A DNA stretch of 64,000 bases. Origin: Adineta vaga (Eukaryota; Animalia; Rotifera). This document shows positions 15,555 through 41,900 of the stretch, one piece after another. Location of the stretch: contig CP075496.1 in assembly GCA_021613535.1 (NCBI GenBank), positions 8,494,001 through 8,558,000 on the forward strand. The letters run 5' to 3'. The translations under genes and the position numbers were made by a program. Under the pieces are notes generated by a model. It saw nothing but the letters and a program-made list of their open reading frames with translations, had not been told where the DNA came from and ran no database searches. Numbering within the stretch: position 1 is the stretch's first letter; each line of letters begins with the position of its first letter.

Positions 15555-17094
15555 TTTTTTTTCGATTTAATCTAGATTGACATTAACTAAGAAAAGAGAA
15601 AAAAAACGAAAACCATTCTTTACATGCCGGAGAATGTCACATTTGAAAAATACTCACCATGTTGATTTTCATCGAATGACAAAATGCTGACTATGAAAGT
15701 AATATAAAACGGATGACTATTTTCTATTTTTATTTGACGATGTATGTTTTGTTGAATGATTATGTATTAAATTATATTACACACAAACACTACTTTTCTG
15801 TTGGATTTTTGCTTTTCGTTTTCACAAGATAAAACATACACGCACACACTCGCACGCGCAGTCGATAGTGTAGTAAAAAAGTGACGAACAAATGTGTTTG
15901 TATATGTAGATGCGGCATGGCATAAATGCGAAAAAACACATCTATGAATGAAAATAAAACGAAATTAAAAGGACAAAGAAAAAAGAAAGGAAGTTGGGTG
16001 TTATTAAGTTTATTATATCCGACGGCAAGGTAAGCTGATCTATAAAAAAAATTGCATAAAAAAAAGCTTTTGTTGAATAATGAAAAAAAAAATTCTGTTT
16101 GATTGTAAAAGGTTTCACATCTGTATTTTATTCGGTAATAGCTAGTATTCAAACATATCTTGCCACCTACTGTGAAGCTGATAGGATCAAGAGCTCTTTC
16201 TACGCGTATATAATTTATTGAAGATCAATAGAAAGACAAAGAAATTTGTCATCTATAAAATAAAATTGTCTACATATTGAATGACGATCTGAATTATTGT
16301 GTATAGAAAGTGAATTTTTGGAATAAAAAAAATTCACTGATCCATCAATTATTGATTCCTATTATAATGCCTACTATCTAATCCGATTCTGATAGAACAC
16401 CGACTACATTTTTCTAAATTTTGTTATTGTTGATAAAATCAATCCACAATCAAAACATTTTAAAACTATTTGATCGCCTTCATTCAGACAAACAATCTAT
16501 TCAATTGTCTAAATTATAATTGATATTTGTTTATAATTTTACTTTCATTACTTTCAAGATAATAATGCAATTAATTTCAATACATATCTGTTGGAGATGA
16601 TCTAAAAATGCTGGAAATCACATTTGGTCTTTCGATCTTATTTAATACACATGATTGAAAGGCAAATGTTTGGAAATAAATTCATAGATGATGTGAAAAA
16701 AAGATGCTATCGAATTTTTTTTATATCTCACACATAGTATTTTGTTCACATTTATTCCTAGAATAACTCTGTTTCTCTAGATCACACGCACACACATATA
16801 AGAATTCTTCAATATAGAAAAAAAGAAAAACATGAGAAGATAAACACAGACATTGAAAAAAAAATGAGCTCGTGCACGACAAGCAGTAGAGACAATACAG
16901 AGAAGAAGAATATATGAAAATTACACACAGACATATGTTGAACGAATGGATGTGCAAAACGAGGAAAAATTCAAAGGCGCGAAAAAAAGAAAGAGCAACT
17001 GTCGATCGATGACAAAAAAGAGAAGAAAAAAAGAATAAATATAGCACGAACAACGGACCGTTGTTTTACATATACAATGAGAAGTGCTACTTAT

Positions 17095-20000
17095 CTAATT
17101 TTTAGCCTCTAGACGAGCAGCTAGTGTACTTTGATATGGTTGTTGTGCACCAAAACTTCGAAGTACCTGGCAAACATGGTCATGTTGCTGAGATTCAGCT
17201 AAATCATAGGCAGTAACATCTTGTTCTTCGAAACGAAATTGTTGATTTACATTGGCACCATGTTCACATAAGATTCGAACTGTATCTGCGTGACCCATTG
17301 CTGCTGCAATATGTAAACATGATAAACCACTCTAAATAAACATGAATATTACATAAAATATCTGATGTCTTTGTAAGTGAAGAGTGTGTTACTTGTTCTG
17401 TTCCATTAACATCAGCTTCTTTTTCAAGTAAATATTGAACAATATCTTGAAAACCTTTTGCACATGCACAAAATAGTGGTGTACGTCCAGCTGTTTCACC
17501 CTAATACGAATAGATGAAATCTTAATGAATCAATCTATTTATCTATTCACTTACTTTTCCTTCGATTTTATAATTAACATCTAAACCAGCATCAACTAAT
17601 AATCGTAAAATATCAAATGATCCTGATTCAGCAGCAACAATTAAACCATTAATTTGTCCATCATATAAATTTTTAGCTTCAATATCGTGTTGTGCTCCAT
17701 GTTTAATTAATAATCGAGCTAGTTCAACATTATTATGTTGACAAATGGCAAGAAATGGTGATGAACCACGTTCAGATGTAACATTTACATTTGCATTTGA
17801 TTCAATTAAATGACGAATAATTGGTTCATTATTTCTCATACATGCAATCAATAGAGGTGTTTGATATTCAATATGAAGATCACGTGCTATTTGACCTTTA
17901 GGTGAACGATTGACATCAGCACCATGTTGTGTTAATAATTCAACTATTTCTAAATGACCTTCTTCTGTAGCTGTATACAAAGGTGTAGCACCAGTCTAAA
18001 AGAAAAGATTCAATATTGAATATGAATTTAAAACAATCGAATAACTCTACCATGGTAACAGCATTAACATCGGCACCATTTTGAATGAGATATTCACAAA
18101 TTTCGATGTGACCTTTTTTTGCTGCACCAAAAAGAGGTGTCTAAAAAGGAAAACAATGAAATTGGAATTTGCTTATTCTTACATGATAAAACTCGTTCTT
18201 TACTTGTCCAGCAAGAAAATTTTCTTCGGCTAATTCTCCTCGTGGTGTAATATTAACATCAGCACCGGCATCAACTAGTGCTTGAACAAGTTCTTGATTA
18301 CCCGATTCTGCACAAAGAAGTAATGGTGAAACACCATAACGATTTTGTACATTAACTTGTGCTCCTTTGTTAATTAGAAATTTCACGACATCCACACGAT
18401 CTTTTAATGTTGCCATGAATAAAGCGGTTTGTCCTGTAATATTTAAATTATCAGCATCTGAACCACTTGGTGCAAAATCCAGATCAGCATTAGCTTCAAC
18501 ACATGCTTCAATTATATCTAAATCACAGATTTCTGATGCTAATAAAAATGGTGTTGAACCTAATTTGGTTACAGCATTGGGATCAGCACCACGTTTAAGT
18601 AATAATTTAACTACATCAAATTTTCTAGATTTCATTGCTGCATAGAGTGGTGTCCATCCAGTAATATTTAATTCATCAGCTAGACTACCAAATGGTGCAA
18701 TATGTGTATCAGCACCTGCATTCAATAATAATTCAACTACTGATAACATGCCTTTTTGTGCAGGAATCCAAAGAGCACTAACACCATAATGATTTTGTAC
18801 ACGAGGATTAGCGCCACGATCTAATAAATATTTTACTATATCTATTCGACCTTCTTTTGCTGCACAAAATAATGGTGTTTGTCCACATAAATTCATTGTT
18901 AAAGCTAATTGACCTAGAAAAACCACGTTATTTTTCAATGTATTTCTATCGATAACAAAATTCTAGAAAATCTTACCACTTGGTGCGAGTTCGAGATCAG
19001 CTCCAGTTTGTACAAGTAATTTAACACATTCAACATAACCTTGTTCAGCTGCAAGCATCAATGCTGATATACCCGATTGATTCTGATGATTTGGATTTGC
19101 ATGATGTGCAAGTAAACGTTTGACACATTCGGGATGATTGTATTTCGTTGCACCAATTAATGGCGTTGAACCAGCTATTTTATTCTCTTCGGCTCGTTTA
19201 CCTACGGGTGCTGAATCAACAATCGCGCCACGTTGTAAGAGAGTATCAAGAATATCTGGCCATCCAACTTCGGCAACCATTAGTAACGGTGTAATACCAG
19301 ATAAGGAAGCTTTGTTTACTTCGACTTCGGGACATGCTAGATAATAGAATAAAACCAATAAAACTCATTGTCATAATAAATTATTTCAATTGACAAACTC
19401 ACAAGCTAAAATTTCGGTGACAGGTTTATGTTTTTTTCCAGCAGCAATACTTAATGCTGTTAGACCGTCTGCGTCTCGATAGCCTGAAAGAGAAAAAAAA
19501 GAAATATGACTTTTTTTTAAAATTTCCAACACAACTTTATGTATATTTAGAAGAGAATGAACAAAAAAAAAGAAAGAACGATCTTATTCGAAAAGTATTG
19601 CGAGATTCAAATAAAAATAAGTTCGATTCGTATAGACAAAGGATTTATTTTCATCATCGGATGATGGCAAATATCGTATTTGAATGTCAAGAAAATGTTG
19701 TCGATCTGTTGAACGATCGAAAAGATTCGATGGTAATGAAAGGTAATGATAGTCTTTAATTTCATGAGTTTCATTAAGAATCATTGTATAATTAGAATTG
19801 AATGTAAGATTTACTTGAGAATATAAATAACATGTATATAGATAGAAACGTAAATTATCATGTGAATTATTAGGAAGAGTTAGATTGAATGAATTTGAGA
19901 AAGATAAATTTGTATAGTTGGTATATGGAATTGATGTTAAATTCCAAATATGTCTTAATTTATATAAACGTGAAAAATCCTTTTTTAAAACACGTTGTAC

Positions 20001-22302
20001 ATGTGTACTAATAAATTTTATTTCTTGTCGATCATAGGTAAATATGCCATTCATTTCTCCTTCGACATCAGACAATTGAGTATAAATCATTGCTGATAAA
20101 TTCGACGAAAGATTAAGAATATATTGTTCGAAGACATATGTCATAAAATATTGATCTGGATAACGATTGTATGATGATCCATTATTCAACAAACCAAATC
20201 CACCACATTCACCAATAACTAATGCTCGGTTTCCATCATCATAAGTTGGAAATAAAATATTGTTTGTATAATCATGTATGTCTCTTAAATGTCCAATACC
20301 AGTTCGATCTTGCCAACCACTTGCAGCATCAATTAATCGATTTTGATCATAACGTTGAAGCCATGTTCCTAATCGTATAGTATCATATTGACCCCATTCT
20401 TCATTGAATAATACCCAAATAACAATCGATGGATGAAATGAAAGAAAATCAATCATTGCTTTTAATTCCGTTTCAAATTGTAATTTCGAATGAAAAGCTT
20501 TCTCATAACCCCATGGTCGTGTTTTCATAATATCTTGTTGTGCAGTCGTTCTTGTCGGTAAATTATTCGTTATATTATCACGATGTAAACGTAATTGTCT
20601 ATCAGCATCTAATTCAATTTCATAACCATTAAAATTGTCTGCAGAAGGCATATCTTGCCATACTAACATACCGAAAACATCACACCAATAATACCATCTT
20701 GAAGGTTCACTTTTCATATGTTTTCGAATTGTATTAAAACCAAGATTCTTCATTTGTTTAATATCATATTGATAGGCATAATCAGTTGGTGAACGATAAA
20801 GACCATCAGGCCAATAACCTTGATCAAGAACACCCAACATAATATAAGGTTTACCATTTAAACAGATTTTTTTCTTGTTTAAACAAAGAGAAACTTGTCG
20901 AAAACCAAGATAACTGTCAATATGATCGATAAGTTTATTCACATGATATAGATCAATTTGGACATCATATAAATATGGATTTTCTGGTGACCAGAGATGT
21001 ATTTTTGATAAAGGAAAAGATATTTCTTCATCTACATTTGCTCTGTAAGATTCAAATTCGATTAAACGTTCACTATTTTTCTGTGTAATAGTGATTTTAA
21101 ATTGAATATCTAATGCATCATAGACATTATATTTTTTTCTTATTATTTCATCTCTTCTTACATCTAATAGTAGTGTATCTTCATGGAAATTCGATTCACG
21201 ATAAATTGGAAATTCTTTATTTGGTGACTGATGATCATCTGCAAGTGAGGATGAAATTGCTAATTCAATACGATATTTTAGAAGAACATCTGTTGATGAA
21301 AGTTGTGTATTAAATTGTAAACGATGAATATAAATAGTTGGTACTTGTTCTAACCAAACAGTGCTCCATATTCCAGAACATGGCGTATAGAATATCCAAT
21401 ATTTATCTTCACCATCTAGTAATTGTTTTCCACGAGGTTGAAAACCTTTATTTGTTGGATCCCAAACGCGTACAACTATTTCATTCATATCATAATCAAT
21501 GAAATATGGTGTAATATCGTAAGAAAATGGATCATAACCGCCTAAATGTTTCCGCCCAACAATATGACGATTTACATAAACTACTGTTTCATAATCGACT
21601 TTATCAAAATTTAAAAGTAGACGAGCTTGATGCGAGCTCTTTTGTACCAATCGGGAGATTTCAAACGAAACTTTCGTTTATACCATAAATACATAGTTTC
21701 ATCAACAGATTTTTCTATGCCTGATAAATATGATTCTACAGGAAAAGGTACACGTATGGTATAATCGAAATTCATTGGATATGGACTCGTCTTGTTTGTT
21801 ATCGTAAACGACCAATTTCCGTTTAGATTGAACCATAAATTTCTTCTCAAATGTGGACGTGGGTAATCATCATGCAATGGTATTTTTTCATCCATGACTC
21901 GTCTTGTCCACCGTGTTGAAATATTCTTTTTAAAATTGGATTTTGATGAAGTTGGAAAAGTAACGAAAGAAATAGAAGAAGGAGAGGAAGAATCATCGGG
22001 TAAAAGACGATATTGATAAAATAAGATAGTTAAAATTCCAAAGAGAAGAACACTCTATGAGAATAAGTCGCGATAAACTGATTTTAATCAAAACGCAAAA
22101 AGAAAACATTTTCAAGATCTATTTTCTACATACCCATATTGAGAACTTCTTTTTTCGTCGTTGTCGCCTTCCGTCGATCAAGTTCATCAAGAATTTCTTT
22201 AATTCGTTTATCATCGCCTTTTTGTGCTGCGATTAAGATTTCTTGATGATATCGTTCAAGATCACCTTCGGCTTTACTTGCTTTCGAACCCGTGCAACCC
22301 AT
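17095..22302 (-). CDS. Long ankyrin-repeat protein with an N-terminal MGC lipidation motif; multi-exon
   Basis: Exon 22302-22134 (MGCTGSKASK...LNMG) has a phase-1 donor that joins in frame to the exon at 19483 (GYRDADGLTALSIAA). Many GxTPLxxAA ankyrin repeats follow, down to the stop at 17095. Confidence 0.9.
19584..22077 (-). CDS. Glycoside hydrolase family 2 (beta-galactosidase/glucuronidase-like), bacterial type, nested in the ankyrin gene intron; frameshift near 21645
   Basis: YPRPHLRR..W.NLNGNW, VPFPVESYLSG, VDYETVVYVN, GGYDPF, GIWSTVWLE, WSPENPYLYD, LDQGYWPDG, GFNTIRKH, WVLFNEEWGQ (acid/base Glu) and IGECGG (nucleophile). No introns in the body. An N-terminal hydrophobic stretch SVLLFGILTILFY precedes it. 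Confidence 0.9.
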
Positions 22303-24579
22303 TATGTCTGAAATAAATCGAAATGAATCGAGATAAAACAAAAAGAAAACGAAAGAACTTCATTTTATGACTTTTTACACACATACTTAACAGAATGATA
22401 GAACAAGGTTAATACTCACTTCCAACGTAAGAGTCCCATGTCTGATTTGTCTATCATAAATAATTGAAAAGAAACGAGTCATCACTACACCGAAATATGA
22501 TAGGATCAAAACGAAACTTTTTGATTATTCGAGCGGAAAATGAGTACACGAAAAAAAACCCATTGAAACGTAGGAAATAATAAATCACTAGGAAATGTAT
22601 CTTCCGATATCTTCCTCATTCAAGCTTAACTCTCCTATCATTAACCAATGATTTTAATCCCTTATGTTACAAACCAATGCATGCGTTCTCCTTCAAAATC
22701 ACTAATGATAGGATATCTTTGACAGTCTATCGAAATAAACACATTGACTCAAAGGAAGCAAAACCTTCTTTCGCTCATTTTCTAAGGCGAGATATTCATC
22801 TTAAATGACTAAAACATACTTTCAAAGATTGTTTTTCATATCTCTGAAGAGAATACAATTCTTAACAAGTGATTCGAACGATAAGAAACATTCAAGAGAC
22901 ATGATTCATAGGTAGTTTTTATTATATGTATAGGCATAATAGACGAGAATATGAGACAGACAAAATAAATAGAAACAATTTATGTAGTAGTAGAGAAGAA
23001 GACGAAGAACATACATGTACAAGTAAAAACAACACTAGATGAGTCAGACAATACCCATTAAAATTCATCGAAACTTTCAAAAATTTTCAATTTCGAAAAA
23101 AAATCCAAATGAAATATGAAGATTATTTAAACAATTTTTTCATCTCATATTAAACACATTTATCAAAAGTATAGATGTCACTATTAGTTACTCAGTTTGT
23201 GTACATAGAATAAATCTAATTGTCTTGAAAAAGTTTAAGATTCTGTAAGAAACGATTGAGAATTTCTTTCTATTTATTCTATTCTATCAACTAACGAACA
23301 CAGATGAATCATTAAGGTTAAAGACAATGTTCAATATATTGAACTAGTAACAAAGAAAACATGAACGTGTTCGAGTTAATAATACAAATGTTACTACACA
23401 TCCGTGAAGGTTACGGTTATTAAATCGATATGTTATCATTATTCAATCTTTTTTCTTTTGACACATTTATGGTCATTATTTGTTTCCTTCGCTTGCATTG
23501 GATAGTTAATTAATGAGATGATTTAAATCAAATAGAAAAACGAACGACATCATCATGTATCGCTTTTTTTTTCTCATAACGAATAGATCTTCGTTAGAAT
23601 AATAGAAAAAGAAAGATCAACTTACTTTGTCAAGAAACGATGAGAAAAGTACTAAAAAAAATATTGAGTAGCTGAATAAATACAGAGAGAGTGTGTATTC
23701 TGCCAATAGAATAATTTATTAGACGTGAGTATAGGAGAAGAAAAAAAGGTGTTTAAATATTCATTTCTTTGCATCTATGATTAGACAAACTATGAGATTT
23801 ATCGTTCGATAGATTTTTAATATTATATAATGGGTATAAGACAATCATTTCAAACGAACGTTTTGCTTTTATCACAATAAATTCTTCGTTTTCTCTTCAA
23901 AAAGGAAAACGACATGATTGAAGTTAATTCGCTAATTGGATAAATATCGTGTTTATCAAATCGAAAGCAGTAGTTGGAGAACTTAGCGTTAACAACTGTC
24001 GATAATATATTGACAACAAATGCGCACATCAACTACTAGTTTTCTTTTCAAAGATAAGTCTTATCTTATTTTTATATTCGTTATTGAATTCGTATTAATA
24101 CAATAAATCGATGTGATCAGTTTGAGATATATTTATCAATGATCGGAATAATTCAAGTAGTCTCAAAGGAGAATGATAGTAATCGTAAGAAAAAATTTCT
24201 ATTGAGAACTAAGGAAATTTTATTCAAGAACAGTTATTCGGATAATTGCATTGATTATAACCAGAGGAAATTCTTGCAGATGGTAAACAAAAAATATTTT
24301 TCTTTCGAAAACAAAATAGACAAATGTTTGATTATACATATATGTCTACGTAATAACCTATTCATGATAAAAGTTGACTAATTCATTGAAATATAATCAA
24401 AATCCGTCGAAAAACCAATATTGACGTTTATCATGCATAACCACTTTCAAGGTTACTAATGACGCATGATTAACAAACGGTTATTTTTAGATGAAAACTA
24501 CCATAAAACAATGTAACAGACCCTTTATTATCATTTTCTTTGTCAAGAAGTGACGTAAGTAATGTAATTGGTAGGTAGG

Positions 24580-34905: not shown

Positions 34906-37622
34906 ATGGTATTGATGAAGATCTTTGGAGTGCCTATGGTCATTATGAGTATTAGTAATAGTTACTGTAGGTGTAATGCTCACTGTTATTGCTTCAGCTG
35001 TGACTGTAATTAGTATCTATGCTCTTGGTCCTGGAGGAGGTAAGTTGACAATATTTTAAAATTCAAGAAAGAAACAATGATTTCCTATACGTTAATCACT
35101 GAGCAGAAATATATTTAAGAACGTTTTCTTTCCTTCATTATTTATGAGGGAGAAATGAATTTATGATATATTTCGTTTCTTAGAATGTAAAATCTTAGTT
35201 TTTAATCATTGTATTACAATTATTATATTTTTTATAGAAAATACTGTGACTGTTGTACAAGCAGATATCAGTGTGGCTATGTTACGTATGATAATAGGAA
35301 ATGAATACAATCAATTTTTTAGTAAGAGAACGACGCTTCATGAAACTATCTACGGAATCAATAGCACTTTTTCACAAAAATTTCCCAAAGACTTTGTCAA
35401 AGTTATTATATCGTCGTTTACTGAACGACCTCGTCTCATCGATCATATTGATAATGAAACGAATTCAATTGAAGGACAACCATCACTAGTTATTGTCAAT
35501 GGTAGTATTTATTTTATGATGAATCATACCAAAGAGCAAATTCGCCAAGCGATGGAAGAGTATACTCAAAATATTGTTCTTCTCACGCGTGACGGCCTTC
35601 CCAGTTCAGGAAATGGTGTTATATCACAAGCATCTTCAGCTTTTACCGGTACTTTCCCATGCAAATACACAGTTGGTGGTGTGAAGAACCTAAATTCATT
35701 GGATTTGTCCGATGACTCTGCTATATCGCCTCCAGAATTATTTACTCTTCTTCCAATTAATTCTACTTCAACTTCATTGCCATCTATCACTAATACCTTA
35801 GAAAATAGTACTGTAATGACTAATTATACTACCGAGAGCAGTATTGACACAAACACAACACATACAACTCCATTGATCACAAACACAACTCTATTGATCT
35901 TAAACCAGACAGATCCAACTCCATTGATCACAAACACAACTCTATTGATCTTAAACCAGACAGATCCAACTCCATTGATCACAAACACAACTCTATTGAT
36001 CTTAAACCAGACAGATCCAACTCCATTGATCACAAACACAACTCTATTGATCTTAAACCAGACAGATCCAACTCCATTGATCACAAACACAACTCTTATT
36101 GATCTTAAACCAGACAGATCCAACTCCATTGATCACAAACACAACTCTATTGATCTTAAACCAGACAGATCCAACTCCATTGATCACAAACACAACTCTA
36201 TTGATCTTAAACCAGACAGATCCAACTCCATTGATCACAAACACAACTCTATTGATCTTAAACCAGACAGATCCAACTCCATTGATCACAAACACAACTC
36301 TATTGATCTTAAACCAGACAGATCCAACTCCATTGATCACAAACACAACTCTATTGATCTTAAACCAGACAGATACAACTCTGAGATCCACAGAAACCGA
36401 TTCAACTTCGAACGTCACACCGACAGATACAACTCTGAGATCCACAGAAACCGATTCAACTCCGGACGTCACATCGACCGACACAACTCCGAGATCCACA
36501 GAAACCGATTCAACTCCGGACGTCACACCGACCGACACAACTCCGGACGTCACACCGACCGATACAACTCCGAGATCCACAGAAACCGATTCAACTCTGG
36601 ACGTTACACAAACTTATAGCAATTTGAATGATACAACTGTTACTCTTATTACAGAATTGACGAATCCTTCATGTTCTTTTATTTCTCAATCAAGTTTTCA
36701 ACTGCAATTGAAACGGGCAATGCAAACATTGGAATTACCGCTATTTTATAATATAACTTCTACATTTCAAGAATTATCCACAAGTCTTACCAAGCATATT
36801 ATAACAAATTTTTCGAGTAAATTTCTTAAAATTGTTATTACAGATATAACAGGTATACCACTATTATCCCATAATAATCAATCAAGTTATATAAACATCA
36901 CTGGCCAAATTTATTCCGCTAACAATTATTTTGAAACCGGACTATACAATCTTCTTCGTTCATATGAATCAATGATAACTTTTAAAAATACAACAGGACA
37001 ACCTAGTGCATACATAGGTAAAACAAATTCTGTCACCGTATCGCTGAAATCGAAGGTCACACTTGAAGAAGAAACAAGTCATTTTTATATGTGTTATCCT
37101 CTGTCATCTCTCTCTTTGTATTACAATAACCCTGATAACTTTACTACTGTTTGTCAACCCTTTTTCAAAATGTCTACAAGTATTGGAATGCGGTTTCATA
37201 TGTATCATTCAAGTTCAGTTAGGTACAATAATCAAACTTATGCATTTGAACATCTTATTGCAAGTCTTACCGAACATATGATAATAAATTTGCCCGGTAC
37301 ATTTGTTTATTTTCATGTTGGCAATATACTTGATGCAAGTGTGTCATTCACACTATCGGAAGGATCTCATTTGACAGAATTCTCGATTACGATTTCTGGT
37401 GCATATTATTTCTTGTTAGAACATACAAAAGAAGAAATTCGTGCAATTCTTAATAAATACGCTACATCACTCGATTTTCAATCAGCAACTGGCGATATAT
37501 TTTCCGTAGCAAGCAGTTTTTCAAATGGAGATTTGTCAATATCATCGGAAGGGTTTTCTCAAGTTTCATTAAGAGAAAATACGTTGTTTACTTGTCAACG
37601 AGTTGTTCAATATTCATCTTAA
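34906..37622 (+). CDS. Type II membrane mucin-like protein A: N-terminal TM, three SEA-like domains, tandem repeats; frameshifts near 34950 and 36095
   Basis: Exon 1 encodes a hydrophobic anchor (VLVIVTVGVMLTVIASAVTVISIY). The intron 35040-35237 joins in frame to ORF 35246. One repeat copy has an extra T (aactcttatt) that shifts the frame into ORF 36099. Confidence 0.7.
35866..36610 (+). repeat. Coding minisatellites: ~10 x 51 bp (PLITNTTLLILNQTDPT) then ~4 x 54 bp (TDTTPRSTETDSTPDVTP)
   Basis: Near-identical unit ccaactccattgatcacaaacacaactctattgatcttaaaccagacagat is visible directly. Confidence 0.95.
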
Positions 37623-38937: not shown

Positions 38938-41900
38938 ATGTTTGATCCATCTTTGGTCCTTCGGTTTATTATGATTGGACTTACTGCTGGTGTAATGGGA
39001 TCTGTAGTCGTGACGACTGTAATGATCATAGTAAAGACTCAAGAATTACCACCGGTTTATGAATCGAATATCTATTTAGTTCTTGATCGCCCCATTGCTG
39101 TCTATGAATTAGATTTGTTCTATGATCCACGAGCAACGTTAGAAGGTTTTATTGAAAGTCTGAACTTTGAATATAAATCATATTTTTCATTAACATGTCT
39201 TAAACTTATTGTTACTGCATTTAAGTTAAAACCAATTGTACTTGAAAAACTTCCGAGTCCTATCGAACAAATACCGAAAGATACACCATCCATTGTCGTT
39301 TTAAATGCGACGGTTTTTTTCAACCAAAGCTACACTGCTGAAGAGGTTCGAGCTGCTCTTATAAATTATACACGAATTATTGATCTTATTAATAAATATA
39401 ATGGCAAACCAAGTGGAAGATACGCGACTATAAATTTGGCAAAGTCAATCTTCAGAGCTACCAATCCTTCCAGCTTTAAAAAGAAAGACGCATTGATGCA
39501 AAAAGATGTTGAAATTAATATGTCACCGCAAGACTATGTTCTCGAAGCGATATCAGGAAGCAACGATGATTTCTATACTACTCCACCGATTCAAAAAAAA
39601 ACGTGTGACTATTTTGTTCCAGCATATATGAGCATAACGTTTGAACGTTCTTTTCCTACTACAGAAAAACGTCAATTTGCTGATCTCGCATCCACTTTAC
39701 AAGATCTTGCCACAAATGTTCAAAATCGAATTACATCAAAATTCGGTACATCATTCATTAAACTTGATATTTTACTGTTTTCTGATCAGCCAATTCTATT
39801 TCCCAATACTCAAACAGTACTGACAACCGTTGTTTGTAGGATTTATCTAACATTAAATCAACGCGCCACTTTGATAGAACAAAGTCTCAAAGACGATACA
39901 CAATCGATTACTCTGTTGGATGTTGCCAATGTCCCAAGTTCAGCTATCGCGTCATTTTCGTCCAAATACTCCATCTTTACAGACACCACTTATCAATCAC
40001 TAACGAATCAGCTAACAACTGAACTGACTAATCTTTGCTACAAAGACATGTGGACAATCTCAATGACCATTCCAACAACAATACCATCCACAACATACAC
40101 ATCCACGGAAACTACTATCACCAACAGCAAAACTACAACTAGCTCTCCTACTACTGTCATAGTCACAACTATCCCTACCACTACTACTCTTAGAACTACT
40201 ACATCCAGCACTATTACTGCTACTACTATGCCGAGCACTACAGCAACCATCACCACTACTACTCCAAGCACCACCACACCCACCACTACTACCACGGAAT
40301 CTACAACTACCACCACCACACCCACCACTACTACCACGGAATCCACCAGTACCACCACCACACCCACCACTACTACCACGGAATCTACAACTACCACCAC
40401 CACACCACACCACTACTACCACGGAATCTACCAGTACCAGTACTACCACCACCACACCAACCACTACTACCACGGAATCTACAACTTCCACCACTAGCAC
40501 CACCACACCAACCACTGCTACCACGGAATCTACAACTACCACCACTAGCACTACCACACCAACCACTACTACCACGGAATCTACCAGTACCAGTACTACC
40601 ACCACCACACCAACCACTACTACCACGGAATCTACAACTACCACCACTAGCACCACCACACCAACCACTGCTACCACGGAATCTACAACTACCACCACTA
40701 GCACTACCACACCAACCACTACTACCACGGAATCTACCAGTACCAGTACTACCACCACCACACCAACTACTACTACCACGGAATCTACCAGTACCAGTAC
40801 TACCACCACCACACCAACTACTACTACCACGGAATCTACAACTACCACCACTAGCACTACCACACCAACCACTACTACCACGGAATCTACAACTACCACC
40901 ACTAGCACTACCACACCAACCACTACTACCACGGACTCTACAACTACCACCACTAGCACTACCACACCAACCACTACTACCACGGACTCTACAACTACCA
41001 CCACTAGCACTACCACACCAACCACTACTACCACGGACTCTACAACTACCAGTACTACCACCACCACACCAACTACTACTACCACGGAATCTACAACTAC
41101 CACCACTAGCACTACCACACCAACCACTACTACCACGGACTCTACAACTACCACCACTAGCACTACCACACCAACCACTACTACCACGGACTCTACAACT
41201 ACCAGTACTACCACCACCACACCAACCACTACTACCACGGAATCCACCACTAGCACCACTACTACTACAGAATCTACCAGTACAAATGCCGTTACTAGTA
41301 TAAAATCCACTACGACGGCTGCTACACTCAGTACTACCACAAGTACTAAGACCCCCGACACAACTACTACTATAACGGTGACACGCACACCGGAAATAAC
41401 AGTATCTACAATTGCAAAAACTACAAGTACACCATTAACGCGCGTTCCTGAAACAGTTACTACAACGTCCAGATGTAATTTAAACGATCAAGTTTATGAA
41501 GCATATATGAGCATTAGTCTTTTGCTTTCCGCTACTAATGATGAAATGGCTGTATTTTCAAATATAGGTACAACAATTGAAGATATTCGAGTATCGTTAA
41601 ATGTCGAATTGAAAGTAGCATTTCCATTGTCATTTTTAAAATTTAATTACATTATGATGTCAAATCAACCGATTGTATTTTCGACTATGAAGAGTAGACG
41701 AAGAAAACGGCAGTCAGATCAAACAGCAGTGATCATTGTGATTGGTAAAGCTTACTTTACACAAAGTCAATCACGATTCGAGTTACGTACGTCCCTAAAA
41801 AATTATAAATTGGGCATAGATGTTCTAAACAAATACGGAACATCAAATACAAGACTTAGTTCTTTTTCTGCAGATCATTCTATATTCGGAGATACATCAT

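Follow-up and report, generated by a model that had tools for sequence, protein, structure and literature searches.

The bdelloid rotifer Adineta vaga carries, in the 64,000-nucleotide (nt) stretch analyzed here and hereafter called the window (C4:8494001−8558000), a bacterial-type glycoside hydrolase family 2 (GH2) gene that is contained entirely, and in the same orientation, in the first intron of an ankyrin-repeat gene. From a comparison of 14 loci, namely the window and 13 others that are bdelloid or bdelloid-like, we favor with fair confidence a model in which one transcription unit yields two unrelated proteins from a shared, dual-coding first exon. We are evenly divided over a fuller version of it, in which the overprinted host exon would give the enzyme its AUG, its positive-inside tail and the start of its membrane anchor, an upstream open reading frame (uORF) opened in a further exon, exon 0, would choose between the host and the foreign AUG, and the whole arrangement would be older than the bdelloid genome duplication and would have outlived the host gene in Rotaria.

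The window, of ~30% G+C, belongs to a genome of 100.8 Mb in six contigs. Reads were compared as assembled contigs over positions 17000−22900, from three RNA runs (X1 and X2 among them) and one DNA run (X10); the three runs were classed as RNA because the introns are absent from their contigs and the spliced leader is carried. The nearest proteins come from Adineta and Rotaria, and the loci compared with it are the following.
L002: the ohnolog on C1 (near 4702000−4705500), with a GH2 59% identical to that of the window and an open frame of 804 codons.
L005 and L019: Adineta steineri and Adineta ricciae, respectively, both ankyrin-bearing.
L004 and L008, and L006: Rotaria sordida and Rotaria socialis, respectively.
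L003, and L010 to L015: a Logan contig and metagenome contigs, respectively, all ankyrin-bearing.

The host gene is resolved by its transcripts. In RNA contigs of X1 (depth 81) and X2 (depth 41), position 22134 is joined directly to 19483, skipping 2650 bases on the minus strand between GT and AG, a joint that does not occur in DNA run X10; the first-pass annotation of the window, which had placed the whole GH2 frame in an ankyrin intron at 22133−19484 on the same strand, was thus correct on this point. The eight ankyrin exons give a coding sequence of 2193 nt with one terminal stop and a 730-amino-acid (aa) ankyrin-repeat protein (Pfam Ank domains), whose N-terminus, MGCTGSK..., is of the myristoylation type. 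The X2 contig of exon 1 continues past 22309 into the reverse complement of GCTTATTACAACTTACCAAG, which is given as the bdelloid leader (PMC3795323) and which, followed by AG and GT, has 42 genomic copies as against none for a control pattern. More than half of bdelloid mRNAs are trans-spliced with a 23-nt leader (PMC1925144), and the ankyrin mRNA carries the bdelloid spliced leader at 22307. Its ATG (22302−22300) lies five bases after the leader acceptor, with 56 ankyrin codons in exon 1; the leader found here contains no ATG. Apart from intron 1, the introns at the locus measure 55−66 nt. In the list below, as elsewhere, a caret marks a splice boundary.
22134..22307, minus strand: shared exon 1, with leader acceptor cag^A at 22308/22307 and donor TGG^gtatgt at 22134/22133.
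19484..22133, minus strand: ankyrin intron 1, 2650 nt, RNA joint in X1 and X2, containing the GH2 gene.
19483−19403, 19336−18977 and 18913−18204, minus strand: ankyrin exons 2 to 4, from RNA joints and boundaries.
18140−18051, 17995−17554, 17499−17396 and 17331−17095, minus strand: ankyrin exons 5 to 8, from RNA joints and boundaries.
19402−19337, 18976−18914, 18203−18141, 18050−17996, 17553−17500 and 17395−17332, minus strand: further ankyrin introns, from RNA contigs.
At the last of these introns (17332−17395), contigs of all three RNA runs that skip it have three extra letters (TTT) between the two sides, which indicates a slight departure from the assembly in the splice site or in the allele.

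The nested frame runs from 22054 to a stop at 19586−19584 and encodes the Pfam domains PF02837 (1e-8), PF00703 (2.5e-11) and PF02836 (6e-10), all above curated cut-offs: a sugar-binding N-terminal, an immunoglobulin-like and a TIM-barrel domain, in family order. N416−E417 (FNEEWGQ) and E481 (IGECGG), which we take to be the expected GH2 catalytic acid/base and nucleophile pair, are invariant in 86 aligned homologs, a set that includes the window, so that the window keeps every invariant column by definition. The closest solved structures are 7sf2, and 9j6n and 9j6m (beta-D-galactofuranosidase 2), at E values of 1e-85 to 4e-89, and similarity to the latter two (~1e-85) is all that hints at a substrate class, which may be, for example, beta-D-galactofuranoside. 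The domain region is preceded by a hydrophobic stretch, SVLLFGILTILFY, which starts at 22054 directly after an in-frame TAG (22057−22055); the first in-frame ATG lies 53 codons downstream of its start, at 21895, in agreement with an earlier reading of the sequence that had seen a hydrophobic anchor upstream of the first GH2 ATG.
19584..22054, minus strand: GH2 main exon, comprising the remainder of the anchor, a linker rich in Ser and Pro, the three GH2 domains and the TAA stop (19586−19584).

Among the best 120 of ~8000 matches, the named relatives outside the rotifers are all bacterial, at 34−41% identity, and non-rotifer animals are absent, although no targeted search for them was made. In an unrooted tree, 20 rotifer-type GH2 sequences and one Logan protein (P0024) form a single clade on a long branch with 100% support in the Shimodaira−Hasegawa-like approximate likelihood-ratio test (SH-aLRT), within which the sequence of the window clusters with Rotaria (99%) and that of C1 with A. 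steineri (98%). Judged from these matches and this tree, the GH2 gene is a horizontally acquired gene of bacterial type. Nor is it contamination, since on either side of it stand exons of a single spliced animal mRNA that bears the leader, and 13 additional loci show the layout. In all 11 non-Rotaria loci (exon 1 is partial in L015), one strand carries exon 1, then GH2, then the ankyrin exons, and the synteny proposed as a check is borne out at the C1 ohnolog and at 12 other loci. Nesting is present in both ohnologs and in several bdelloid lineages and is therefore older than their splits; by this comparison the arrangement would predate the bdelloid genome duplication, and it is old and stable, with Adineta and Rotaria among the genera that keep it. 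In the ankyrin-bearing loci, the host protein is much better conserved between lineages (70−94% identical) than the nested GH2 (56−65%).

In the assembly, the GH2 gene is split into two minus-strand frames (21895−21611 and 21650−19584) that overlap at 21650−21611.
21632..21633, minus strand: one-base indel splitting the GH2 frame, X10 contig compared with the assembly.
An X10 contig spanning 20176−22188 (depth 118) has an A added behind 21632, which fuses the two frames (...DWYKRARHQARLLLNFDKV...) into 823 codons read from 22054; the fused frame equals the Rotaria orthologs in length. The frameshift thus reflects a mistake in the assembly or else very recent damage to one of the alleles. A sterner reading, which we consider unlikely, is that the window copy is a recent pseudogene or one dead allele, that the deletion at ~21633 is real, and that the RNA over GH2 is intronic pre-mRNA, in which case the shared-exon mechanism may still hold in the C1 ohnolog and in other species. 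In its favor are the split frames and a deletion that lies outside any homopolymer; moreover, the X10 contig differs from the assembly at seven other sites in 2 kb and may therefore represent the other haplotype, and the depth of RNA over GH2 is ~3−5% of that over the ankyrin gene. Against it, the gene is stop-free over 823 codons of AT-rich sequence apart from the indel, with all invariant residues kept, the only DNA contig over 21633 in an independent run has the frame intact, and an RNA contig at 21786−21996 shares three variants with that intact-frame contig. Parts of GH2 are covered by RNA contigs in three runs from two studies (depth 1−5, compared with 30−80 for the ankyrin exons), and with its invariant columns kept, its frame open in X10 and these low-level RNA contigs, the GH2 gene looks functional. 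Elsewhere in X10, contigs match the window as far as 19578, 19582 and 21617 and then run into unlike sequence, and the T-rich 100 nt that lead from the GH2 stop to ankyrin exon 2 are covered, in the region 19476−19582, by two variant contigs of depth 73 and 83; such loose ends may be haplotype differences or assembly-graph branches, at T-rich low-complexity sequence or brief overlaps.

The evidence that ties the enzyme to the host exon comes from the frame of exon 1 that is shifted by +1 relative to the ankyrin frame. In 14/14 loci no stop interrupts this frame between an ATG and the donor, and its last codon ends exactly at the donor; the ATG usually stands 27 codons before the donor and a second one often 18 codons before it. 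Likewise in all 14, a phase-0 join links the exon-1 donor to an acceptor located where the GH2 anchor begins, and this acceptor is tAG in 10 of them, at once closing the GH2 frame upstream. In the window, the two +1-frame ATGs are at 22214 and 22187−22185, the last +1 codon is TGG (22136−22134), and the predicted enzyme, with the extra base of X10, comprises 27 + 823 = 850 aa.
22134..22214, minus strand: dual-coding part of exon 1, MINELKKFLMNLIDGRRQRRKKKFSIW, 27 codons, lying over ankyrin codons 30−56.
22055..22133, minus strand: predicted GH2 intron, 79 nt, from the shared donor to ctcatAG^, whose AG lies in the TAG at 22057−22055.
The last residues that the +1 frame encodes form a basic cluster, which reads RRQRRKKKFSIW in the window, QQQRKKKYLIW in L002, YQRRRKKCSKW in L004 and RRTRRKKCSTW in L012. 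In the 12 loci computed, a hydrophobic 17-residue window (Kyte−Doolittle 1.7−3.5) starts no more than four residues from the junction; the net charge is +3 to +7 on the N-terminal side of this segment and zero or below after it, and the joined peptide is predicted to bear the signature of a type II signal anchor. From the acceptor to the first ATG the frame is open and hydrophobic in all loci, with ATG positions that differ between them. In L012 and L014, an in-frame ATG is missing all the way from the acceptor to past the conserved YPRP motif, and an upstream coding exon is therefore required in those two loci. Among the splice models compared, the +1-frame join is the sole one that fits 14/14 loci.

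In Rotaria, the host gene is gone and this part of exon 1 is still there. No ankyrin repeats occur in the flanks of L004 and L008 (6−8 kb downstream) or of L006 (~1.2 kb), and the ankyrin frame of the exon-1 relic is broken in each: it reads MSCTS-stop and carries a frameshift in L004, its ATG has become ATA and stops follow in L008, and in L006 the upstream part is unrecognizable. The +1 frame, its ATG and the donor ATGG^GTATGT are all kept, and the frame joins in phase to the anchor. The published NCBI models P0003, P0136, P0138 and P0141 of R. sordida use this very join (MNWFGIKYQRRRKKCSKW^NIIVCGIF...), as does the 850-aa R. socialis model P0132 (MFKHRICCLIVCLGQHQGSRKNCTKW^NIIVFGIF...), and Rotaria was annotated with BRAKER and same-species RNA sequencing (PMC7943196). 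By tblastn, residue 27 of P0132, the first after the junction, aligns to base 22054 of the window. As judged from these relics, Rotaria is a natural knock-out of the host gene, in which the former ankyrin exon would survive only as the first exon of the enzyme.

Codon choice, tabulated for eight of the loci that have the whole ankyrin exon 1, points the same way. Ankyrin codon 30, Asp or Asn, is xAT in 8/8 loci, which with the following G makes the +1 ATG, and other Asp codons mix GAT and GAC. Where a Leu codon precedes an A (codon 54 in eight loci; codon 34 in four, Leu then AAA), it is CTT or CTC in 12/12 cases; CTA, TTA, CTG or TTG at these positions would create a +1 stop, and Leu positions that are safe in this respect do use TTG, TTA and CTG. 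When synonymous codons were reshuffled according to each locus's own usage, the +1 frame remained open for at least 27 codons in 0.6−30% of trials per locus, a result that is suggestive rather than decisive because the loci are related. The second frame is kept independently of the first, being open in 14/14 loci and retained in the three Rotaria loci with a broken ankyrin frame.

Under the shared-exon model, a minor mRNA form would splice donor 22134 to the acceptor at 22055/22054 and would end downstream of the GH2 stop, in the 100 nt that remain before ankyrin exon 2. Translation would start at the +1-frame ATG at 22214 or 22187, ankyrin codons 30−56 would be reread as a Lys/Arg-rich cytosolic tail running across the junction into the hydrophobic helix, and the product would be a signal-anchored enzyme of ~850 aa in type II orientation (N-terminus in, C-terminus out). 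The foreign gene would thereby have gained a start codon, a topology signal and probably a promoter by overprinting a host exon.

Several observations weigh against this model. The 22134 to 22054 junction is not seen in the RNA contigs, none of which spans 21997−22121; Logan contigs drop rare isoforms, however, and the missing junction is for that reason not evidence of absence. A look-up of GH2 transcripts through protein clusters and exact proteins returned only genomic contigs and gene models and no spliced cDNA. A competing acceptor, aatcAG^, ends at 22078 in the window, as had been pointed out before, and is also present in A. steineri; it would define a 56-nt intron, typical in size for this locus, and joining at 22077 puts a stop in every usable frame, so that its use would yield non-productive mRNAs. 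The A. steineri models P0151 and P0153 use this first acceptor (66−68 aa, …LNMG^EFSFYDFYNTK) and represent either a real non-productive isoform or a gene-finder artifact; other gene models, considered below, place the join in the ankyrin frame. In the leader-bearing mRNA the ankyrin AUG comes first and in a strong context (A at −3, G at +4), and GH2 would consequently need leaky scanning, the uORF route or another 5′ end. Conservation of the +1 frame follows in part simply from that of the ankyrin frame, and the per-locus shuffle probabilities are not small when taken alone. Finally, the reference haplotype is frameshifted at ~21633 and this allele may be broken, and the low RNA depth over GH2 could reflect unspliced ankyrin pre-mRNA. 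As a separate observation, in the lineage of the ENA protein P0161, which shares a 90% cluster with P0012 (contig L003), the short GH2 intron lacks stops in the +1/GH2 frame and has a length divisible by three; P0161 is an 823-aa prokaryote-style reading frame running from the +1 ATG through the intron into GH2, and retention of the intron would not break the protein there.

That GH2 is instead an independent nested gene, with its own start site or leader acceptor (at 22078 or 22055) and translated from 21895 without the anchor, the +1 match being a by-product of ankyrin conservation, strikes us as distinctly improbable. Good acceptor motifs do lie 56 and 79 nt past the ankyrin donor, trans-splicing affects more than half of bdelloid mRNAs (PMC1925144), L003, L010 and L013 have an ATG adjoining the anchor, and the exon 1−GH2 junction is missing from the RNA contigs. 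An independent start is at odds, however, with an anchor frame that every locus keeps open and hydrophobic despite varying ATG positions, with L012 and L014, where no in-frame ATG occurs until well inside the catalytic domain, with a leader that carries no ATG, and with the retention of the exon-1 relic and its donor in Rotaria after loss of the ankyrin gene. The spliced leader was likewise rejected as a source of the GH2 ATG, as it has none, and an internal trans-splice acceptor in exon 1 (GCAG, codons 25−26) was dropped, being found in 4/8 loci.

Upstream of exon 1 lies a candidate mini-exon, which we call exon 0, together with a conserved sequence box.
22420..22439, minus strand: exon 0, ATGGGACTCTTACGTTGGAA^GTGAGT, with ATG at 22439−22437, donor GTGAGTAT and GT at 22419−22418.
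22520..22540, minus strand: conserved upstream box, TTTTCCGCT..., aligned in 9/10 loci and also in L014 and L019.
The exon 0 pattern, an ATG plus 8, 20 or 29 nt (always phase 2) followed by GTRAGTAT, recurs in 10/10 ankyrin-intact loci that reach far enough, 75−201 nt upstream of the exon-1 acceptor, and its donor has decayed in R. sordida L004 and L008. Exon 0 is without RNA coverage, as no RNA contig spans 22319−22900. Some 80−100 nt further upstream, the box TTTTCCGCTT(G/C)A... is shared by the window, L002, L003, L005, L010 to L012, L014, L019, L004 and L008, and is probably a promoter element or transcription-factor site of the shared locus.

The first-pass annotation had noticed this mini-exon and had spliced it into GH2 at 22077, with the help of one indel. 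The sequence and its conservation stand; an in-frame join to GH2 is impossible in most loci, and the proposed join fails, with no indel near 22055 in X10 and no RNA contig over exon 0. The one base that X10 does supply is the one behind 21632 that fuses the GH2 frames. A variant in which exon 0 of the window is spliced straight to tAGAG^ (exon from 22052), skipping exon 1 and giving MGLLRWN-VLLFGILTILFY... with a classical signal peptide, appears very improbable to us. It would sidestep the ankyrin AUG, the phase-2 exon 0 and the T at 22052 are in frame with GH2, and exon 0 and its phase are conserved; yet the splice requires that the anchor begin with an AGx codon, as it does only in the window and L011, the splice is impossible in eight ankyrin-intact loci (L002, L003, L005, L010, L012, L013, L014 and L019), and the missing RNA coverage of exon 0 counts against it as well.

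We give least credence to a fusion of exon 1 to GH2 in the ankyrin frame, which would place a myristoylated 56-aa N-terminus on the enzyme. Such a fusion is what the BRAKER models P0010, P0152, P0017 and P0165 contain, which join ...EVLNM to V(V/M)(F/L)IQF... in the ankyrin frame and so speak against the +1-frame join; the C1 ohnolog has a matching gcAG^ acceptor, and in the window a join of exon 1 to 22077, also put forward by the first-pass annotation, is indeed in the GH2 frame. There, however, it runs into the TAG at 22057−22055, which is present in X10 too and blocks the model, and a suitable AG is missing from the window, L012 and L014, with the fusion possible only in L002, L005, L019 and L013. 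Moreover, the ankyrin-frame join cuts the anchor to 8−11 residues, it is inapplicable in Rotaria, where the ankyrin frame is broken, and the A. ricciae models continue into the ankyrin exons, which gives them the appearance of a gene-finder artifact. The models P0165 and P0017 of A. ricciae and P0152 and P0157 of A. steineri reach 1128−1494 aa by fusing exon 1, GH2 and the ankyrin repeats, with the GH2 stop spliced out, and these fusions are very likely an annotation artifact of the nesting. The earlier idea that a foreign enzyme captured host splicing, so that one locus yields two unrelated proteins, is strongly supported by comparison of the 14 loci, while both splice models offered for it are wrong or unsupported.

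In the shared-exon model, exon 0 may instead bear on the choice of start codon. If cis-spliced to 22307, it would open in the window a +2-frame uORF of 17 codons, which would extend past the ankyrin AUG and terminate at 22276−22274. In the eight loci computed, the predicted uORF has 13−26 codons, crosses the ankyrin AUG and stops 28−46 nt beyond it, and all further ATGs of exon 1 as far as its last codon belong to the GH2 frame. Chance should contribute to this pattern, because +2-frame stops are common in AT-rich sequence. The pattern suggests that the uORF may mask the ankyrin AUG and thereby ease the start problem of GH2. More speculatively, the exon-0 AUG would open the short uORF across the ankyrin AUG, ribosomes would reinitiate at the next AUG downstream, that of GH2, and spliced-leader mRNAs would favor the ankyrin protein and exon-0 mRNAs the enzyme.

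The locus has parallels in several known systems. At the cholinergic locus, alternative splicing can give the two genes distinct transcripts that have their 5′ exon and promoter in common. There, the first intron of ChAT/cha-1 contains the single-exon VAChT/unc-17 reading frame in the same orientation, an arrangement conserved from nematodes to mammals (PMC3053374). Both loci thus have a single-exon frame nested on the same strand in the first intron of an unrelated host gene and long conserved; in the cholinergic case, however, the shared exon is non-coding and the two products serve one pathway, whereas here exon 1 would code in both mRNAs, in two frames, and the nested gene, a foreign one, is not evidently connected in function with the ankyrin protein. 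Exon 1 is seen directly in the ankyrin mRNA, and its use as a first exon by GH2 is suggested by the comparative evidence and by the gene models of Rotaria.

Dual-coding exons are rare in animals. In CDKN2A, one exon stretch is read in two frames to give the unrelated polypeptides INK4a and ARF. XL-alpha-s and ALEX of GNAS are likewise translated in two frames from one exon stretch (PMC2329644), as we propose here from sequence. ALEX is made from the same mRNA as XL-alpha-s, and INK4a and ARF share downstream exons and differ in the first, whereas the present case would be the reverse, with the first exon shared and the downstream exons different. The overprinted frame would contribute only the start codon, the basic tail and the first residues of the anchor, and would do so for a foreign enzyme, while neither partner is foreign in ALEX or INK4a/ARF.

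In regulation of the GCN4/ATF4 type, a uORF that overlaps the main AUG out of frame lets ribosomes start further downstream; by analogy, the two AUGs here would differ in belonging to different proteins, with the uORF present only in the exon-0 mRNAs. Horizontal gene transfer into bdelloids is described as both ancient and ongoing (PMC4632278 and PMC3499245), and the present gene resembles other expressed bdelloid genes of foreign origin in being a bacterial-type carbohydrate-active enzyme, kept across genera, with host-type features such as a predicted intron. Our literature search found no report of a foreign gene activated by insertion into a host intron together with a reread, overprinted host coding exon, and no dual-coding exon linking a host gene to a foreign one.

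The locus bears on the question of how a promoterless bacterial gene without eukaryotic signals becomes a working animal gene. If the model is correct, the route would lead from insertion into a 5′ intron, through use of the host donor and promoter, to a start codon and a secretory anchor drawn from a reread host exon. It also carries a warning for annotation, as current models at the locus truncate GH2, fuse it to the ankyrin gene or split off small spurious proteins.

Elsewhere in the window, two plus-strand tandem arrays with a 51-nt period, at 35858−36613 (10 copies) and 40222−41261 (20 copies), with 90−98% matches, cause a spike in G+C and skew at 36−41 kb. The second array encodes a Thr/Pro/Ser-rich, mucin-like stretch in a plus-strand open reading frame that starts at 38938.

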